Positions 2,191 to 13,856 of a DNA stretch of 15,629 nucleotides are shown one piece after another. Both the position numbers and the translations under genes were made by a program. The stretch spans positions 1 through 15,629 of the forward strand of contig BAAFSQ010000232.1 in NCBI GenBank assembly GCA_054661495.1. Reading direction: 5' to 3'. The first letter of the stretch is position 1. The number at the start of each line of letters is the position of its first letter. The notes below the pieces were generated by a model, which searched no databases, was not told the DNA's origin, and saw only the letters and a list, made by a program, of their open reading frames with translations. This DNA comes from Zygophlyctis sp. KS116 (Eukaryota > Fungi > Chytridiomycota).

Positions 2191-3000
2191 ATGGCTCAAA
2201 ATGATGAATTTACAGACACTGAAGCATTAGACTCTATTGTTTCTTTCCCAACATTATCAGCAGAAGGTGATCTTCTCCTTCAAAAAGGGTGCATCCATGA
2301 AGCCATTGAAATATATACAAAAGCATTAAGAATTCGACCGTCTGATAAACACTGTCTTGTTTCTAGATCCAGATGCTATATTCAAATAGGAAGTCCAGAA
2401 TTGGCTTTAGCTGATGCAAACGAATCAATTAAAAATGATCCTCTCTTCTTTAAAGGTATTTATCAGAAAGCATCTGCCTTGTATGCTCAAGGAGATTTTG
2501 AATCTGCACTTTTATTCTATCATCGAGGACATGCAATGAAACCTGAAATGAGTGATTTTAGAATCGGAATACAAAAATCAAGAGAAGCTATTGAGAATAC
2601 AATTGGAAATCCCAAATCTTTACATATTAAAATTCCTCAAAAACTCTACAAGTTTTTAAATCAGACATCAAACGGACATGAATCTGCATCTAAGAACAAT
2701 AAGAGATCATTATTTGGACTAGATGCAATTCGTCCATATGAATATACAGGATCATTAAAACAAAACATTCAAAACAAGTTTCTGGGAGAGTTGTATGAAG
2801 ACAAGTTATATTTGGAAGAATTATTAGCCGATAAAGATTTTAAAGATTTTCCAGATGATGAAATATCAACGGTTGTACAAGATGGACTACGATTTATCAG
2901 TACTAGAGTTGAATTTTGGCGTCAACAAAATCCATTATTTGCAAGACCCAAAGGACCAAAGATCCAACCTAGAATACACGCAAAAGAAACCATTCAATAG
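2191..3000 (+). CDS. ODAD4: TPR protein, TTC25 / outer dynein arm docking complex subunit 4 homolog (N-terminal portion only, 269 aa, intronless)
   Basis: Three TPRs with TTC25-typical segments DKHCLVSRSRC, FFKGIYQKA.ALY..GDFE.ALLFYHRG, FRIGIQKSREAI.N.IG, LGELYEDK.YLE.LL and FWRQQNP.FAR. Confidence 0.88.
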   Translation: MAQNDEFTDTEALDSIVSFPTLSAEGDLLLQKGCIHEAIEIYTKALRIRPSDKHCLVSRSRCYIQIGSPELALADANESIKNDPLFFKGIYQKASALYAQGDFESALLFYHRGHAMKPEMSDFRIGIQKSREAIENTIGNPKSLHIKIPQKLYKFLNQTSNGHESASKNNKRSLFGLDAIRPYEYTGSLKQNIQNKFLGELYEDKLYLEELLADKDFKDFPDDEISTVVQDGLRFISTRVEFWRQQNPLFARPKGPKIQPRIHAKETIQ

Positions 3001-5416: not shown

Positions 5417-5457
5417 AAGTTCGCGACACGTTAAGTTCGCGTCATAACGCGACGCGT
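5417..5457. promoter_or_regulatory. Cluster of four CGCG motifs (MCB/SCB/E2F-like) just upstream of ATG 5478
   Basis: AAGTTCGCG twice (5417-5425, 5433-5441), CGCG at 5448-5451 and ACGCGT at 5452-5457, in an otherwise CpG-poor AT-rich background. Confidence 0.5.
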
Positions 5458-5477
5458 ATTAACATTCTTGAAAGAAA

Positions 5478-6420
5478 ATGGGGGCTCCATCTTCATCTTG
5501 TAGCTCTATCACTCCAAGTGACTGTCAATGTGATTTCGATGCAGGATCCTATACATTGACCGAGAATTACACCTATTGCCAAGATGAATTCAATCAATAC
5601 AACTGCTGTAATCAAATGGGGAATAATTATGCCGATTATAATCAAACATATAAGGCATTTAATTGTTTTACTCCCAATGCTACGATAATTGCTCAAAATT
5701 CGACTCTTTGTGATGATCCTAATTCATGGGTACAACCTCTGACCTGCCCTCCTGTGTTCGGTCTTTACAGAACATTGGGATTCTTAGAATCGGAATGGAT
5801 AGGAGATCCATTAAGCTGCTGTGGACAAAATGGCATCACGTGTGATTTTAAGAATCATGTTACTGGAATGTAAAAAGGAAATTGATTAATTGTAGTGATT
5901 GGTCTTCTAAGAACAAAGCTGGAAAACGTCTTTTAGCTGATGTTTTTGTGGAAATGAATGGATTAAAGTCATTGTATGAACAATTTATAACTCATAAACA
6001 TAGAAGTTTAAGTGGAAATATGCTGTATGGCTCTATACCTGCATCAATAACTAATTTGGTATCGTTGGAATATTTGTATGCTTTTAAGTGATTTCTAATT
6101 AAAGGAATTTGTCTCATAATGCTTTTACTGGTCCGATTGCAGAAATTCAATTTACGAAACTATCAAACATGCAAGTGCTGTAATCTAGAGTTTTTAAAGA
6201 TTTAAGTGATATTTCCTATAATAAGCTTGGAGATTCAGTTCCCAATACTTTGGCAAATTTAACCAATCTAAAAGATTTGTAAGTTAACAATCCTAATAAT
6301 CAGATCTATCGGTAACAATAGATTCTCTGGCAGTATTCCAAATAATCTTCTCTCAAGAAATGTTACTGTAAAATATACCCAGTATAACAGCTCCAAACCT
6401 ACGGAAGCTGCTATTGTTAA
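5478..6420 (+). CDS. Cys-rich N-terminus plus plant-type leucine-rich repeats. Either a stand-alone ~260-aa protein ending at 6420 or the 5' half of a longer LRR-CA fusion
   Basis: LRR cap SCC.QNGITCD...HVTGI, then repeats LSLSGNMLYGSIPASITNLVSLEY, LNLSHNAFTGPI, LDISYNKLGDSVPNTLANLTNLKD and LSIGNNRFSGSIP, after removing phase-2 introns 5870-5895, 5974-6003, 6076-6104, 6180-6206 and 6279-6303. The 3' end depends on whether 6368-6390 is spliced. Confidence 0.75.
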
Positions 6421-6448
6421 TATTCGTCGGAGAAAATTCCAGAAATTC

Positions 6449-8313
6449 ATGCTTAAATCTCGTAAGTTTAAAGATTTATTGATTATAAAGGTGATGTTTT
6501 TGACCAAGCCGCTATTGCAAGTGTAGGCGAAATTCAGTTTATGTGCCCCAAGCCATATAGTAGAGCTTTGACAAACCTATGTATGCATTTATCTTTTGAT
6601 TTTCAGATCGCTCATATTTGGAAATAAATCAGAATGCTTCATCAGCTATTGAAAACATGAATACTTTCGTAAGCTCTAAAGCAACTGCTACGCAGGGTAA
6701 TCTTTAAAGTCTAACATATAGTGAAAAAGACTTTAATTGCTGCATTCAAGGTGGGAATTTTCGCATCTAGTATTTTTTGTAAAGGTAAAAGGATTTTGGG
6801 ATATAATGGTATTGAATTATTAAATTATACCGTAGGTTTATATGGCCCGCAAAGATGGAATATCGAATACCCTTCGTGTGCATACCCGAATCAGTCTCCT
6901 GTTAACTTTGAAACTGAAGGCAGTGAGCTTTATGAAAATTTCACTAATTCTACTTTGGCTTTATATTCATCCGTAATTGCAGTAAACTCAGTTCTGGCTC
7001 ATGAAAATACATCAATTGCTACTCAAAAAAAAGTTTCAATTTATATTCAAGACCCATTAGCGAGACTCCAAATTGGAGAAAATATCTACAGTCTATTTTT
7101 GACTGAAATACATACATCTTCGGAGCATAGAATAGATGGGAAAGATTTTGTGGCAGAAGCACAATTCTATTTTAGAAAAGAATCGCCTGAAAGTATCAAA
7201 GCCAAACTTAGTAATTCACCCATCTACTACCCTGATGCTCCATATTATGGTAATCAACCCATATACTACCCTGATGCTTCATATTATGGGAACAACTCCT
7301 CATATTACGGCGACCAAGGTGCTAATTACTCTGGGAATTACTCCTCATATTACGGCGACCAAGGTGCTAATTACTCTGGGAATTACTCCTCATATTATGG
7401 CGACCAAGGTGCTAACTACTCTGGAAATTACTCCTCATATTATAGTAATTTCTCTTATACAGAAGCTAATAGCTCCTTCAGCATGCCTTTCAACTATTCT
7501 TCTTACTACAAGATGATGTTCGAATATTCTGCAGAATACGCCCAGAATATGTCTATCTCCTTGCGAGATACTGCTCAGTCCTTTTCTAATTTCACTAAAT
7601 ATGCTATGGATTCGTCTGAGTTTTATTATGCCAATTATTCTTATAATTATTATACTAATTTGGCGAATTCTTTTTCGTACACGTCTTCTTACTACCGTAA
7701 TCTATCGGGTTTAGCCCCAACTGATCTGATTCAGGCTATGTCAAACTCTTCAGGCGCAGGAATTTATTCAGTACAGGATCAAATGCAATCAGGTCCAATC
7801 TTGCCCTCTGCTCCTCCCACTCCCACAGGTGTGGATAATGGTCCTGGTAACTCGAGTCCTACTTTATACCCATCTGGCCCTGGTCAAGAATGCTTTTCTG
7901 AGTATGGAAAATATTATGACGCGTGCAAGGTTCGTTTTAATGGTGCATTTATGAAGGACACAGAGCAACCTGACGAGATTGTTGCTATCGGAGCTCTTGT
8001 TGGAATTGAGGATGAATCTTCAGATTTTATTTCTCAAGTGGCCAATGCATACTCCTCCCCATATTCTTTGTTTAAGCTAGATTATTCTTCAGTGTTTTCA
8101 AAGATTCAGAACTCAAGTAGCTTTTATTCGTACAAAGGATCTTATACCTCGCCGCCATGTTATAAAAATGTTAATTGGCTGGTTTCTACCTCAGAATTAT
8201 TGACAATCTCTGTGGAAGATTTGAAAAAAATTCAGCAAGTGCAAGGATACAACTCTCGGGAGACTCAACCATTTGGCCCTGGCCGAGAATCTGATATTTT
8301 CAATAAAAAATAG
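6449..8313 (+). CDS. Alpha-carbonic-anhydrase-like protein, probably catalytically inactive, with a large low-complexity insert. 5' end uncertain (ATG 6449 or fused to the LRR exons from 5478)
   Basis: GYNG|LYGPQRW...YPSC...QSPVNF (after removing 27-nt intron 6809-6835), HTSSEHRIDGKDFVAE, EIVAIGAL, FYSYKGSYTSPPC...V.WLV and NSRETQP. Upstream exons 6491-6580, 6607-6696 and 6722-6808 chain in phase through introns 6462-6490, 6581-6606 and 6697-6721. Confidence 0.8.
7219..7443 (+). repeat. Coding tandem repeats: 2 x 39 nt (PIYYPDA[P/S]YYGN[Q/N]) followed by ~3.3 x 45 nt (SSYYGDQGANYSGNY)
   Basis: Directly visible. 39-nt units start at 7219 and 7258; near-identical 45-nt units start at 7297, 7342, 7387 and partially 7432. 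Confidence 0.95.
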
Positions 8314-8380
8314 GAATTTGAATTTAATTCGTTGAGGAATATCAATTTGTAGCCTTCCAATTTTTAAACTTAAAATCTTT

Positions 8381-9486
8381 TTAACGCAATGTTTGTTTTG
8401 CTCTTTGTCTGACTTGCTGCGAATATTGTTGCATCCGATTCATTTTATCGTGCTTAACATCAGATTTATTAAAAATACCTTTGTTTTCCATTCATCTGAC
8501 TCGGTATGTCCCAACCCAGAAGGCAATTTCATATTCTCATCCCTATTCTTTTGCCTTTTCCAGTCTTCAAGATCATATGTTTCATAGTCTAATGCAGCTA
8601 GACTTCCTTTACTGTTTTTCATATACCGCTGACGAGTAGTAAGAGACAACTTCTTTTCAATAGGCGTACATCTTCCACTCTGAGCACTACTGGAAACACC
8701 CGTTTTAAAACTATTAGGATGATTAGGATTCACCGACAATTGAGATCCTGCTGATGATGGTCGAGATTGAATATGACTTGATTGGGGTCGATCAATGGTA
8801 CTGGACTGCCCAAAAGCTCCATAGGAATTAGCTGCCATTTGTGGATTATTCATCATTGGTAGATTATTTAGTGCTTGATGCGGATTTATCATTGTATGAT
8901 TATGTAGGGGTTGATGGTTCATCATCTGAGGATAGGATAACATGGGTAGATTTGGAATTGTACTGGGGGCGTTATTGATTTTTTGGGGCCTGGCGCTTTG
9001 AGATCCCATATTATATCCAACTGGAATCGGCGGATATGCCATATTCCCATTAATTTGCTGCTGAGGAAAGTTTGTCATTTGTGGCAGCTGAATTCGTGAT
9101 TTAATGATGGTAGGTGGGCGCATATCATAACCACTCATTTGAGGTTGGTTGATTATAAATTGAGGATTTACTTGCGCCTGCTGTGGATACCACTGCTGCT
9201 GAGGTAGATTCTGTCTTTCAGGAATTGATGTCCGAGATTTCGACATTGCAAAATTCTTCAATGGAGCATTCATAGGAGAATATATCGGCTGACCTTGATA
9301 AGGTGAGGGCATCATCATTTGCTGAGTCGGCTGGACATTATTCATTGGAATGACCATTTGCGATTGATAAGGGTACTGTGAAGGATGCTGCTGCATTTGC
9401 ATTTCCATTGGGATCATATTCGGCATTGGCTGTCTTCCATTTTGGTCAATCAAAGAATAAGATTGTGAAGGATACCGCCTATTCAT
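8381..9486 (-). CDS. Gln/Met/Pro/Asn-rich low-complexity protein with JHY-like (ciliary) C-terminal motif (~359 aa). Exons 9486-8479, 8452-8381
   Basis: Long biased ORF from MNRRYPSQ. A 26-nt intron (8453-8478) gives YETYDLEDWK....MKLPSGLG...DEWKTK|HDKMNRMQQYSQQVRQ, resembling the recalled JHY motif (KLGGLGPD...KEYAKQV). The gene itself is well supported; the family call is moderate. Confidence 0.62.
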
Positions 9487-9745: not shown

Positions 9746-12700
9746 TTAGATTGACGTAAGAAGCTTCGCCCCAGGATCAACAATTTCAGCAGCTTTTTTC
9801 TTCTTCTTTTTCTTCTTTTTATTTCCAGGAAATACATCTCCGTTTATGACTTTTCCTAGTTTGATAGTTTTCCACTCTACTAATTCATCATCATGTAGGG
9901 TGGAATTCTGACTTGAATTCAAAGAATTGAAGTTTGTTTCATTAGCGCATTCTGTCATGTAGTCATCCTTACTATATAATTCAGGTATGTGAACTGACTT
10001 AATCTCTAAATTATAATTTGACAGCTGCTGATTCTTTTTAGAAAAATTGTCACTATATCCAGGAGGAAAATGGGATTTTATAACCGAAAAATTTGGGATA
10101 ACTGCTGGTAAATCATCCTCCTGGTCATTCTTTTGCTTCTTGGCAACATCAGCAGTATGATCATTCAAGATTTTTTCAATTTCAAAATGAGCAGCTTCAA
10201 CAGATTTCATGGATTTCCCGCAAATAATAGCAACATTAGAGGCAGTTTTAAAATCATTATATACTTCAATCCACGCAGAAGATGCTGACCGGATTCTTTT
10301 CAAGGTTTCACCGCCTTTACCGATTATGTGAGGTATAACTTCTACCGGCAGATTTACATGCAAGAGAAACGAATGATCCTCCTAAAAATTTAAGTACCAA
10401 AATTACTAATTCTTTCAACTTCGAACTATAAAATAGTTTCAGCGCAGATGCTTTCCGAGCAGTACTTCGCAAGACCAAAATTCCAGATTTTAAGCTGCTA
10501 AGATCTGATTCAAGTTCTGCATTAAATTCTTTTTTCAATTTTGACATTAAATTTCTAATGAAATAAGATTCAGAAGAATTTTCCTGAAAGTCTTTGTTCA
10601 GTATAATTGGAGGTACTTCCATGGAATTCGAGACGTCCATTTCCTCCTTTACAGTTAGCATGAATTTTTTACCATTAAATAAGCATGAAGGTTTTCTGAA
10701 TCCGATTTAGTCTCACCCACTACACGTAAGATCACTGAGTCAGAAAGCTCTTTTTCTACAAAAATACAAGCAGATAATTTACGAGTAATTCCAATGAGTC
10801 TTTCTCCATTTTTTATACAAATCCGGCTGAAATCGTTTAAATTTAAAGTTACAAAAATATCCGATCCACCTGCTGCAAAAAGGGATGAGATACATAAACG
10901 TTTCTTTCCTGAATATAAAAATGTACTCAATGAATCATCAATTTTCGCTTTAACAGAGTTAATGGCGTCTTTATGACATCTGACATAAACGATGTCAGAT
11001 GGGATTGTTGAAAATTCTTTGGGAATTTCAATCAATACTTTTCCAAAATCTTTCAGAGCATCAACTATTTGACGAATGTTTTGTCCTTTGAGCCCAATTA
11101 ACGGCCGGTGCAAGTAATGAGGAATACGTAATTCTGTAGATATATGGTTAAGCTATCATTATATTATAGAAACTAACCATTTCATCAACCCTTTCCAATA
11201 TAAGAGACTTTACAATATCACATTTGCATTTTTCCCCTTCTAAAACGACACTGGTAATTTCTTCCATTTCATCGATGCTCAGACGCACAGAATGAATGTC
11301 TTTGAGTTTTTTCCAGTTAAAATCATTATGGTTAAGTATGAGTCCCGAGGACATTTTAGGAATTTTGAACTTTAACTGATAAGAATTTTTAATCTGTAAC
11401 CGTTAAGAACTATTCTTACCTCCTTGCCTGCTATTTCCAGTAACTCCGTTTTGATTGAATTGACATTGTCCTCAAATCCTTTTAAAATTAGGAGCCCGAG
11501 ATGTTTGATATCTAAACTATCGACGAATTTTTCGTCGTCACGATCCACTTTAGAAAAAGTGATTTGTACATTATATTTTTCAGCTATTTTTTTTATATTT
11601 CGACCTTGCTTCCCAATCAGCCTACCAAGAACTCTATCACAATGATTCAAATCCAAATCAACCGACTCTGGAACCAATTCCGGATCGAAAAGTGAAAATT
11701 GACAAGTCACAGTATTGCAGATATTGTGGATTTTAGAATTGATAATATCAGCAGCCAAGGGCACTATCAACTTTGGCCCAAAAATCAGAAGTTCATTTGA
11801 CTCCCAAACAAATCGCATATGAAAACCTCGATGGGAATAAATACTATATAAGTCCTTTTCAACAGCAGCTTTAAGTTGTGCCATTTCAGGTATTTTCTGT
11901 CGAATTTCACGAAGTACACCCGAATAAGTAGCTAGATTCAATATACCCATAGATCCATCAAAATCAGGAAATACAGCTTTCATTAAATCTAATTCAACTG
12001 ATATTTTTTGAGAAAACCCGGTTAGGCTCTCGATCTTTTTCCACTGATCAACCAATCCATTAATTTTTTCGCAAACTTGATTGACTCCATTCATTTCACC
12101 ACGAACAATTATCATATTGTTGTCTGATAAATTGTCATGAATTTTAGAAGAGCCAAAAATTATCTTGACAGTATTTTCCGATGGGCCGAGTATTTCCTTC
12201 ATCATAGAGCCACCTGAACCAATCAATCTACCGTGAAAGTGGGCATCAATTGTAAGGTGCTGCGTACAACTGTTTGCTGATGCTGTTGCATCCTCTGTGA
12301 TTAGCTTAGTGATTAAAGAAATCACTTTCTCCGCTTCCTTGTTAGATTCTTCATATTCCAGCTGGGTTAGGAACGGGATTCTAGAGATAATGATTCCAAC
12401 TTCGTTTGATTTATCGCTATTCATTGATGTAAAAACATCCAACAGTCGATCATCAACTTTAGGAAGATTTTTTAATTTAGTTATATTTTGTCCGCGTTTG
12501 CCAATTATATAAGAATGTAATGCGTTAGGAATTGTTACCATTTGAGGGTAGAGCGATTTTGCATGCGAGCAAATAAGTGTCTTCACTGCAGCAATACCAA
12601 CATCAAACTCTTTCCTTGTTTGCCCTTGAATTTCTAGAACAGTTGGACTATTCGGATGACGATAAATATTTATAGCATGTTGCGTTTGAATTTCCTTGAT

Positions 12701-13856
12701 TGTAGATAACTCTCGACTAAAAAGGAAGCGAAAATATAACAAAATCTGAGAATCAGAAAGAGGCATTATATCTTTACAGTCCAGCGTACCAATAAGGACC
12801 GAATTAGCTTTTTCCAAGACAGCCTGTAAAGCCGTACTTAGCATATGCTCCGGCCCTTTAATAGTAATAGTTTCAGAAGTTTCAGAAGAATTTGGAATTA
12901 AAACTAAACATCCAGTTTTTTCCAAGATTTCCTGTTTACCACTACCCTTTTTTCCAAAAATAAATCTATGTTGTGCTTTCTTCAAGGGAACCGCAATGGT
13001 ACCAATATTATGTGACTTGACATTATATATAAATGAAAATTTACCATATCCTTTACAATTCCCTTTAATTTCTCTATTGCGCCAAAAACATTCTCCATTT
13101 CCCCGATAATTACAATTTCTTCATTTACAACCTTTTCGCTTTGATCATACAGGGGAGGAACGTGTAATTTCACATTATACTCCTTCTCCAATTCTGGAAT
13201 TTTGGGACCTATAAAATGATGGAGAAATTTATCAACACTTGTTTTCCCTCTATAATTTGAAGTCTGTTTTTTAACTATTTCCATGATTTCATTTTGTGCT
13301 ATTGCCACTCCTTGATCATCACCCGTAATATCAACCTGAACTTCTGTTGCATCATTTTGATCATTTTTTTGAATCGCAATCTTTGTCATTGAATGCTCAA
13401 TAATCTTTTTTAACATTGAGCCTCCTTTACCAATCACAAATGCCTTTGCAGCATTAGGGATTTTAAAAGTAACAGTTTTCTTGAGACTTAGATATAAAAA
13501 ACTTACAGGAACTGTTAACAGAGAAAGTAATTCTCTTTTAGATTCCAAGACATTGTTGGCAGACCCATGAATAATAAGAGTAACCATTCCCGTTCTCTTA
13601 TTTGATGATAATTCCACAGAAACCTTTCTTCTAGTCATTAAGGATTTGCATATGTCAGAAATAGAAGGCCCAAGTGTTTTTTTCAACTTTTGTAAGTTCA
13701 ATAAATTACCAGATTTTCCTTTGGAATATCTAACCGCTCAAATGAATTTTCAGCTGCTAATTCAAGGCCTGGCATACGACTCTTTTTCCATACAGGTGTA
13801 GTCTGTACAGAATTACTGCATAAGCTAGGGAATAGCTCTGAGGACTTGAAATCCAT
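9746..13856 (-). CDS. SCP160: Vigilin/Scp160-like multi-KH RNA-binding protein (~1309 aa). Exons 13856-13710, 13686-13507, 13479-13045, 13015-11420, 11393-11178, 11152-10673, 10646-10407, 10381-9746
   Basis: N-terminal ELFPSL motif and repeated KH GxxG motifs (FVIGKGG, HRFIFGKKG, HSYIIGKRG, HGRLIGSGG, RLIGKQG, HRPLIGLKG, HIIGKGG). Seven GT-AG introns of 23, 27, 29, 26, 25, 26 and 25 nt join six track ORFs plus an extra first exon into one frame. Confidence 0.88.

Follow-up and report, generated by a model that had tools for sequence, protein, structure and literature searches.

Plant-type leucine-rich repeats joined to a degenerate carbonic anhydrase domain: a predicted gene fusion in a freshwater chytrid-like fungus

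Introduction

Animals are the main group in which dead alpha-carbonic anhydrase (CA) domains are known to have been put to use as binding modules. In the receptor phosphatases PTPRG and PTPRZ, the CA domain binds a protein partner, and a complex of PTPRZ with CNTN1 is available in the PDB (3s97). Nacrein of pearl oysters is reported to be a carbonic anhydrase with a Gly-Xaa-Asn repeat that makes contact with crystal faces (PMC3439604). Classical leucine-rich repeat (LRR) receptors are reported to be mostly missing in fungi, apart from rare chytrid cases (PMC2939053). Here, a gene is described that is predicted to join both kinds of modules. It is located on the 15,629-nt contig BAAFSQ010000232.1, which was analyzed at its full length (hereafter the window) and which is contig C232 of a 12.7-Mb assembly comprising 1175 contigs (G000). 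The deduced product has a Cys-rich module and plant-type LRRs at its N-terminus and, behind a linker, an alpha-CA-like domain with a degenerate zinc site. With a probability of roughly 0.6, we regard it as the result of a lineage-specific gene fusion that led to a non-catalytic binding or adhesion protein of an uncultured freshwater chytrid-like fungus. That the two halves belong to a single fused gene is highly probable.

Results

The gene extends from position 5478 to 8313 on the forward strand. Its ten exons join to one stop-free frame of 2592 nt with matching phases, which specifies a product of 863 amino acids (aa) and terminates with a TAG codon at 8311-8313. All nine introns are 25 to 30 nt long, start with GTA, end with AG and have a GC content of 17-28%. 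The five junctions from exons 1/2 to exons 5/6 are without exception in phase 2, and at each of them an Ile or Leu codon (I, L, L, L and L) is rebuilt at the first consensus position of the following repeat. On the linker side, exons 7, 8 and 9 contain only one open frame each. When the region 6462-6835 was shuffled 2000 times with its dinucleotides preserved, and introns from GTA to AG of 23-32 nt were allowed, a stop-free path in the phase of exon 10 was obtained in three shuffles. The continuity of the linker is thus higher than expected by chance. Removal of intron 9 results in the sequence GYN-G-LYGPQRW, to be compared with the uninterrupted EYNGLYGPERW of a CA paralog encoded on contig C82 of the same assembly. 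Since this removal restores a CA start motif that is unbroken in the paralog, the CA domain itself spans the exon 9/10 junction. Introns of the same tiny class exist elsewhere in the genome: in the HSP90 gene on contig C19, a 25-nt gap of the type GTAAT..ATAG lies exactly between profile positions 180 and 181. Introns 6 to 9 resemble genuine introns of this genome. Splicing of the ten exons into a single transcript is predicted from the DNA; joined coordinates were used solely in codon-change counts and phase tests, while all searches were run with single exons. A preliminary description of the stretch had already proposed the ten exons as one open reading frame (ORF) and the linker exons as single-frame pieces with agreeing phases, and both points were confirmed. 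The other elements that it listed, namely the basic patch RRRK, the KGKR site, a hydrophobic stretch, many NxS/T sequons and the absence of an N-terminal signal peptide, are all present as stated. The product has 31 sequons, 22 of which belong to the CA half.

A word search detected two related proteins, P0001 and P0002, in ENA freshwater metagenomes. The respective contigs, L009 and L010, show 94-97% identity to the window and have neighbour genes in common with it. Both have kept all donor and acceptor dinucleotides, the exon lengths modulo three and the start and stop codons, and indels within exons are multiples of three. The length of intron 8 varies (25 nt in the window, 27 nt in L009 and 26 nt in L010) with flanking exons unchanged in length and phase, and intron 9 is the most diverged segment in the comparison with L009 (18.5%). 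The ratio of non-synonymous to synonymous changes (pN/pS) against L009 was 0.47 overall. It was lowest in the LRR exons (0.22) and in linker exons 7 to 9 (0.27), and reached 0.59 in the CA part and 0.61 in exon 1. Nine synonymous and nine non-synonymous changes in the linker exons (Fisher p = 0.005) suggest that these exons are under purifying selection in the predicted frame. A more distant syntenic orthologue was found in L031, where the C-terminal half of the CA domain is open and approximately 53% identical and the downstream gene is 57% identical. Synteny, which the preliminary description had named as a check in related genomes, is hence seen in the common neighbour genes of L009 and L010 and in the downstream gene of L031. 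Two scans of JGI metagenome contigs revealed no more distant full-length orthologue, and a search with P0002 as query at a strict threshold of 1e-10 gave no match besides P0002.

A decaying or non-functional state of the fusion gene is very improbable. It might be expected from the lost zinc ligands described below, from the variable length of the insert in the CA fold and from pN/pS values of about 0.6 in exon 1 and the CA part, but in each of three diverged copies the 2592-nt frame and its stop codon have remained undamaged, as have 18 of 18 splice sites. Moreover, the overall pN/pS of 0.47 and the value of 0.22 for the LRR exons speak against decay, as does the relative with approximately 53% identity, in which the C-half is still open and syntenic.

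The CA-like domain belongs to the alpha-CA fold. Exon 10 matched Pfam family PF00194 in two stretches flanking an insert, with 86.2 bits (cut-off 27; E 3.5e-24). For the natural insert-free variant (P0002:29-304), an AlphaFold2 (AF2) model was obtained with a pLDDT (predicted local distance difference test) of 78.8 and a pTM (predicted template modelling score) of 0.81. In a Foldseek search against the PDB, this model retrieved alpha-CAs at E-values of about 1e-15, with a probability of 1.00 and template modelling (TM) scores of up to 0.80, including the CA-like domain of PTPRZ. The best PDB sequence match of the domain was the alpha-CA of Aspergillus oryzae, while the N-half alone matched best to the CA-like domains of PTPRZ and PTPRG, in which the zinc-ligand columns read T-H-Q and E-H-Q, respectively. 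The fold and the likeness to the inactive CA domains of PTPRG and PTPRZ, both pointed out in the preliminary description, are in line with these data.

In the window, H94 is replaced by E, H96 is kept and H119 is replaced by Q (E-H-Q), i.e. two of the three zinc-binding histidines have been lost. In addition, the proton-shuttle residue His64 is a Thr, and the pocket residues V121 and L198 have both been changed to Tyr. Retained are Cys23, Cys203, E106, E117, T199, H107 and the Gln-Ser-Pro motif, with T199 and Cys203 lying within GSYTSPPC. The Cys23-Cys203 pair occurs in 110 of 113 relatives, and the window has a second conserved Cys pair as well. Among the 114 aligned domains, 73 have H-H-H in the zinc columns, including three domains of the C82 paralogs. 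Judged by its residues, the CA-like domain is most likely non-catalytic, and since two zinc ligands are changed along with the proton shuttle and two residues of the pocket, the CA half would most likely provide a binding surface rather than an enzyme. That it still works as an enzyme or as a CO2/bicarbonate sensor with an altered Glu-His-Gln metal site appears quite improbable. Residues E106, E117, T199 and H107 and the Gln-Ser-Pro motif would suit such a site, x-H-Q is common in the nearest relatives, and the PDB matches include engineered zinc-site variants of CAII which still bind metal. However, the domain has lost two thirds of its ligands along with the shuttle His and carries Tyr at positions 121 and 198. 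Moreover, E-H-Q and T-H-Q are the patterns of the CA-like domains of PTPRG and PTPRZ, the latter of which was crystallized with CNTN1 (3s97).

In a quick tree, the window CA domain grouped with the C82 CA domains (support 0.85), and it is thus probably a home-grown duplicate. At the C82 locus (C82:4896-12425, reverse strand), canonical alpha-CA domains with an unaltered H-H-H site are clustered, one frame of 714 aa containing three of them in tandem, and the gene that comes first there has a classical signal peptide at its start. After the orthologues, the next CA matches were multi-CA proteins of 1000-3000 aa with approximately 30% identity, some of them from dinoflagellates (Togula, Polarella). 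The x-H-Q variants encountered were QHQ, SHQ, EHQ, RHQ and DHQ, many of them within tandem multi-CA proteins; dead or altered domains seem to be common in such arrays.

The Tyr/Ser/Asn/Gly-rich insert in the CA fold is present in the window, absent in L010 (P0002) and longer, with an internal duplication, in L009 (P0001). In L031, a Tyr/Gly-rich stretch likewise ends just before the C-half. Given the permuted start of the L010 contig, its deletion could be an assembly artefact. Positions 1-2615 of L010 correspond to window positions 8402-8674, followed by 5446-7211 and then by 7863-8456. This permutation, together with the loss of the 651-nt insert, may reflect a genuine in-frame deletion at a tandem or rearranged locus, or else an artefact of assembly. 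The sequence ACCCATCT is present at both edges of the L010 deletion.

The N-terminal half contains plant-type LRRs with the consensus LxxLxLxxNxLxGxIP, about one per exon. By direct reading, four of them are regular and one is irregular, in agreement with the four to five repeats behind a cap that had been reported before. Their assignment to the class found in plant receptor ectodomains and PGIPs (polygalacturonase-inhibiting proteins), also made earlier, is supported by exon 3. With its 23 aa alone, this exon had the ectodomains of ERL1, FLS2, GSO1 and PEPR1 and PGIP among its PDB matches, with E-values down to 1e-22 for the whole sequence; 59 of the 60 listed PDB matches were plant LRR proteins (receptor kinases, receptor-like proteins, PGIP and LRR-extensin). 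LRR-extensin 2 was the best match of exon 6. Single exons gave weak matches to Pfam LRR_1 (E about 0.1), and besides the LRR_1 and PF00194 matches no kinase or other Pfam family was detected in any exon. At least 140 similar one-LRR exons are dispersed over many contigs elsewhere in the genome. For the cap, no Pfam match in exon 1 and no PF08263 match in the genome were obtained; an Atlas feature search pointed to LRRNT_2 clusters at 0.80-0.82, which is a lead only. The cap motif SCC..G[IV]TCD is shared with an LRR gene on contig C80 (E 0.018). Since this C80 member has a signal peptide together with the same cap motif, the LRR part of the window gene probably stems from a family of secreted proteins, its export signal having been lost or never been present. 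The C80 gene (L032; C80:22600-23780, reverse strand) is complete and has one LRR per exon, preceded by a classical signal peptide and a Cys cap. It contains at least eight near-identical repeats of the type LSGSIPxxIGNLxNLQxL, and the exons of the family are very uniform.

Exon 1 begins with a Cys-rich module that matches a Cys-rich paralog of 436 aa on contig C96, which also starts with MGAP (BLASTP E 7e-12; 33% identical). Neither a Pfam scan of exon 1 nor a PDB sequence search yielded a family or a meaningful match, respectively, and an AF2 model built from four sequences was unusable (pLDDT 31.5). The C96 paralog (L020 4394-5704) has no Pfam family and no signal peptide and is composed of repeated units that end in C.T.YC-type motifs. 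M1, G2 and C8 do not vary among three orthologues and the C96 paralog, and a Ser is found at position 6. The start of the product fits MGxxxS/T, the rule for N-myristoylation, and the neighbouring Cys may serve as a palmitoylation site. An N-terminal signal peptide or hydrophobic stretch was not detected in the product. The earlier view of an extracellular protein as a whole is for this reason not supported. An upstream exon for a signal peptide was considered and rejected, as the 145-nt gap to the RabGAP gene contains one short non-hydrophobic ORF whose ATG is absent in L009.

Exons 7 and 8 and the tail of exon 6 have no other copy in the genome. The basic patch RRRK reads RRKK in L009, where the RR pair is kept. 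The hydrophobic stretch of exon 9, KKTLIAAFKVGIFASSIFC, has a Kyte-Doolittle hydropathy of 1.96 over 15 aa and of 1.42 over 19 aa, values which make it look more like the core of a signal peptide than like a membrane span. It ends 13 residues ahead of GPQRW. At the same relative place, about 17 aa before GPARW, the C82 CA paralog has a classical signal peptide. The stretch may therefore be the former signal peptide of the CA gene, internalized by the fusion. Directly in front of it, the window and L009 both have a GTG codon instead of ATG. The KGKR site behind the stretch reads RGER in L009, and a conserved dibasic cleavage is consequently unlikely. This weakens the case for Kex2-type processing at KGKR and leaves the cleavage at KR assumed in the preliminary description doubtful.

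Upstream of the start codon, a cluster of CGCG and ACGCGT boxes forms a candidate promoter module. Four of the nine CGCG words of the window are concentrated there, and the module is kept in L009. Similar modules (CGCG/ACGCGAC) precede the C96 paralog (L020 4340-4380) and the C82 CA gene (L021, approximately 2525-2580, reverse strand). The sequence CGCGACACGTTA is common to the modules of the window and the C96 paralog, whereas the module of the C82 CA gene consists of TTACGTCA, GATCC and then ACGCGT. This likeness between the three genes may point to co-regulation. Since such modules stand 20-55 nt before the ATG in the paralogs too, the predicted ATG is probably the true start. Between 6300 and 6840, i.e. 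ahead of the CA part, there is no CGCG word and no such module. Four lake metatranscriptomes contained six short RNA contigs of the gene, one within exon 1 originating from a relative and five within exon 10 with up to 100% identity.

These data bear on whether the locus gives rise to two products. The CA part might always, or additionally, be made from an internal transcript with its start at the Met codon of exon 8 (MNTFVSS...), while the LRR part is produced separately. Exon 9 would then act as a cleavable signal peptide and yield a secreted pseudo-CA. The signal-peptide character of the exon 9 stretch and its position relative to the C82 paralog fit such an arrangement, as do the Met codons of exons 7 and 8, which are kept in all three relatives, the absence of a junction-spanning RNA contig from the four metatranscriptomes and the lack of an export signal in the N-terminal half. 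On the other hand, the spliced LRR frame is stop-free up to intron 8, so that an LRR gene of its own could terminate only if an intron were retained, and the linker is open in phase far above chance and apparently under purifying selection in that frame. Furthermore, the CA part is not preceded by a CGCG-box module, the hydrophobic stretch follows GTG instead of ATG in the window and L009, and the acceptor in L010 ends in G. Two products are thus rather unlikely; an additional internal start is possible.

The genome belongs to a relative of the chytrids. Its HSP90 had its best named matches (82-85%) in Chytridiomycota (Spizellomyces, Blyttiomyces, Rhizophlyctis, Dinochytrium and others), with metagenome proteins at 88-99%, and a KH-domain protein of the window resembles fungal clusters. 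An origin from a ciliate or another alveolate, considered due to the tiny introns and the dinoflagellate CA matches, was rejected after the HSP90 result. At 9746-13701 of the window (reverse strand), a series of vigilin-like frames with KH domains, interrupted by short gaps, is probably one multi-KH gene with tiny introns. The only match of the eukaryotic small-subunit (SSU) rRNA model (C172:19633-20504) covers positions 623-1823 in two pieces within approximately 870 nt and is probably organellar; a nuclear 18S gene was not found in the assembly by this model search.

Table 1. Predicted features of the fusion gene and its upstream region in the window
Feature	Position	Strand	Remarks
CGCG/ACGCGT box cluster, candidate promoter module	5422..5459	+	20-55 nt ahead of the ATG
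Exon 1, first part: start codon, MG..C N-terminus, lineage-specific Cys-rich module	5478..5750	+	about 90 residues
Exon 1, last part: putative LRR N-terminal cap (SCC..GITCD..V)	5751..5869	+	motif also in the C80 LRR gene
Five plant-type LRRs of about 24 residues, exons 2-6	5896-5973, 6004-6075, 6105-6179, 6207-6278, 6304-6373	+	phase-2 introns between them
Linker: exon 6 tail (RRRK), exon 7 (6491-6580), exon 8 (6607-6696), introns 6 and 7	6374..6696	+	single open frame per exon
Intron 8	6697..6721	+	25 nt here; length varies among relatives
Exon 9: hydrophobic stretch KKTLIAAFKVGIFASSIFC, KGKR, first CA residues ILGYN	6722..6808	+	hydropathy, paralog comparison
Intron 9	6809..6835	+	27 nt, without in-frame stop
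Exon 10: N-half of the alpha-CA-like domain, degenerate zinc site	6836..7211	+	alignment of 114 domains
Tyr/Ser/Asn/Gly-rich insert within the CA fold	7212..7862	+	length varies among relatives
Exon 10: C-half of the CA-like domain and TAG stop	7863..8313	+	PF00194 profile positions 121-230

Discussion

The favoured explanation for the window gene is a fusion within the lineage itself. A Cys-rich module and a five-repeat member of the genome's own one-repeat-per-exon LRR family would have been joined to a duplicated copy of a secreted alpha-carbonic anhydrase of the same lineage. By this event, the former signal peptide of the CA copy would have become the internal hydrophobic segment of exon 9. 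The zinc site of the copy would then have decayed to E-H-Q, and a Tyr/Ser/Asn-rich loop of variable length would have been accommodated in the fold. In the resulting protein, the LRRs as well as the dead CA domain may offer surfaces for binding, the latter in the manner of PTPRG and PTPRZ.

Concerning the topology, we prefer a model in which the signal-like segment of exon 9 carries the CA half across a membrane while the signal-less, possibly acylated N-half stays behind. Transfer of the CA half is suggested by its disulfide pair and second Cys pair, by the 22 of 31 sequons located there and by the signal-like segment in front of it. The N-terminal half, as far as its sequence tells, may be cytosolic and acylated, or it may be exported by another route. 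Alternatively, the whole protein could be attached to the cytosolic face of a membrane, N-myristoylated and palmitoylated, as an intracellular scaffold. This is improbable, even though M1, G2 and the nearby Cys are invariant in the three orthologues and in the 33%-identical paralog, Ser6 is in place and an N-terminal signal peptide is missing. A cytosolic CA half would hardly be expected to keep the Cys23-Cys203 pair, which 110 of 113 relatives possess, along with a second conserved pair, and in this genome the LRR class and the cap occur in genes with signal peptides. Furthermore, an internal hydrophobic segment of the strength of exon 9 would be expected to be engaged by the export machinery. 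A more specific version of the preferred two-sided arrangement goes one step further and sees in the gene a convergent PTPRG-type ectodomain with a buried signal: the dead CA half outside, the acylated Cys-rich/LRR half in the cytosol, or two proteins if signal peptidase cuts. In this specific form it is doubtful.

Several observations weigh against the fusion as the source of one binding protein. Full-length comparisons could be made only with relatives that are 94-97% identical, which results in few substitutions. The linker pN/pS against L010 was 0.82, a value derived from eight changes, and the L010 counts are too small to interpret. The CA part has a pN/pS of 0.59 against L009, and the L031 contig ends 119 nt upstream of the C-half, before the N-half. 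None of the RNA contigs from the four lake metatranscriptomes crosses an intron, and such libraries may contain DNA carry-over. The conserved in-frame Met codons of exons 7 and 8 would permit a separate CA product with a working signal peptide. The x-H-Q pattern, found in about a third of the nearest CA relatives, may mark a subfamily rather than simple decay. The N-terminal half looks extracellular due to its Cys-rich module and plant-type LRR cap, yet lacks a signal peptide and fits no simple topology. Finally, the search and folding results cover separate exons and domains of the 863-aa product.

The pairing of plant-type LRRs with a pseudo-CA appears to be new within the scope that was searched, although each ingredient is known, and so is the reuse of dead CA domains for binding. 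An exhaustive search of representative proteins with the insert-free CA domain yielded 1513 relatives, among which P0001 and P0002 were the only orthologues; P0013 represents part of a more distant orthologue. A regular expression for LRRs gave no hit among the best 150 of the 1513 proteins. Likewise, Pfam revealed no LRR in 20 of the 30 non-CA segments of at least 120 aa belonging to these 150 proteins; PAN domains were present in three. Proteins of metagenomes are called without splicing and may conceal LRR-CA fusions. In a literature search on fusions of LRRs with CA-like domains, no relevant report was found. The impression in the preliminary description that the combination is unfamiliar is borne out by the best 150 relatives.

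If the two-faced topology is true, a binding event outside the cell would be linked to a scaffold inside. Chytrids are major parasites of lake phytoplankton. A surface binder would accordingly be of ecological interest, and in a possible alga-parasitizing chytrid the outer half could bind to the surface of the host. Each new architecture within the large LRR family of this organism would contribute to understanding the possible ways in which zoosporic fungi recognize hosts or surfaces. The gene would also illustrate how a signal peptide can be stranded in the middle of a protein by fusion, which raises the question of topology.

Among the known systems close to the N-terminal half is the genome's own one-repeat-per-exon LRR family, with which the window gene shares the repeat type, the phase-2 introns and the cap motif. 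It differs from this family by the lack of a C80-type signal peptide, the pseudo-CA downstream, the unique linker exons and a KGKR site that is not conserved. Plant extracellular LRR proteins (LRR receptor-like kinases and receptor-like proteins, PGIP and LRR-extensins) have the same 24-residue repeat and a Cys-bearing N-cap, for which the window protein has a putative counterpart. The window protein, by contrast, is fungal, has five repeats and contains neither a kinase nor a clear membrane span nor a signal peptide.

With regard to the CA half, the CA-related proteins (CARP) VIII, X and XI and dioscorin have alpha-CA folds in which zinc ligands have been lost, too, and dioscorin was among the PDB sequence matches. 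CARP-type proteins are single-domain proteins without LRRs, an internal repeat insert or a fused upstream module. In the original description of nacrein, the repeat is said to interrupt the CA domain, similar to the insert of the window gene. Nacrein/N66 of pearl oysters also combines a CA domain with a low-complexity, Asn-rich repeat domain (PMC3439604). The repeat of the window protein, however, is rich in Tyr, Ser, Asn and Gly, its zinc site is degenerate and LRRs are attached. PTPRG and PTPRZ have in common with the window protein an alpha-CA fold in which only the middle zinc His is left, PTPRG with E-H-Q like the window and PTPRZ with T-H-Q, and in both the CA domain is part of a larger multi-module protein. 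They differ in being animal proteins with fibronectin and phosphatase modules, an ordinary signal peptide at the N-terminus and a single clear membrane span; Pfam matches to fibronectin or tyrosine-phosphatase domains were not obtained for the exons of the window gene. Since the window CA domain groups with the CAs of its own genome, its likeness to PTPRG and PTPRZ is probably convergent. An E-H-Q domain that arose in a chytrid from its own H-H-H enzymes would represent a clean case of such convergence with the animal receptors.

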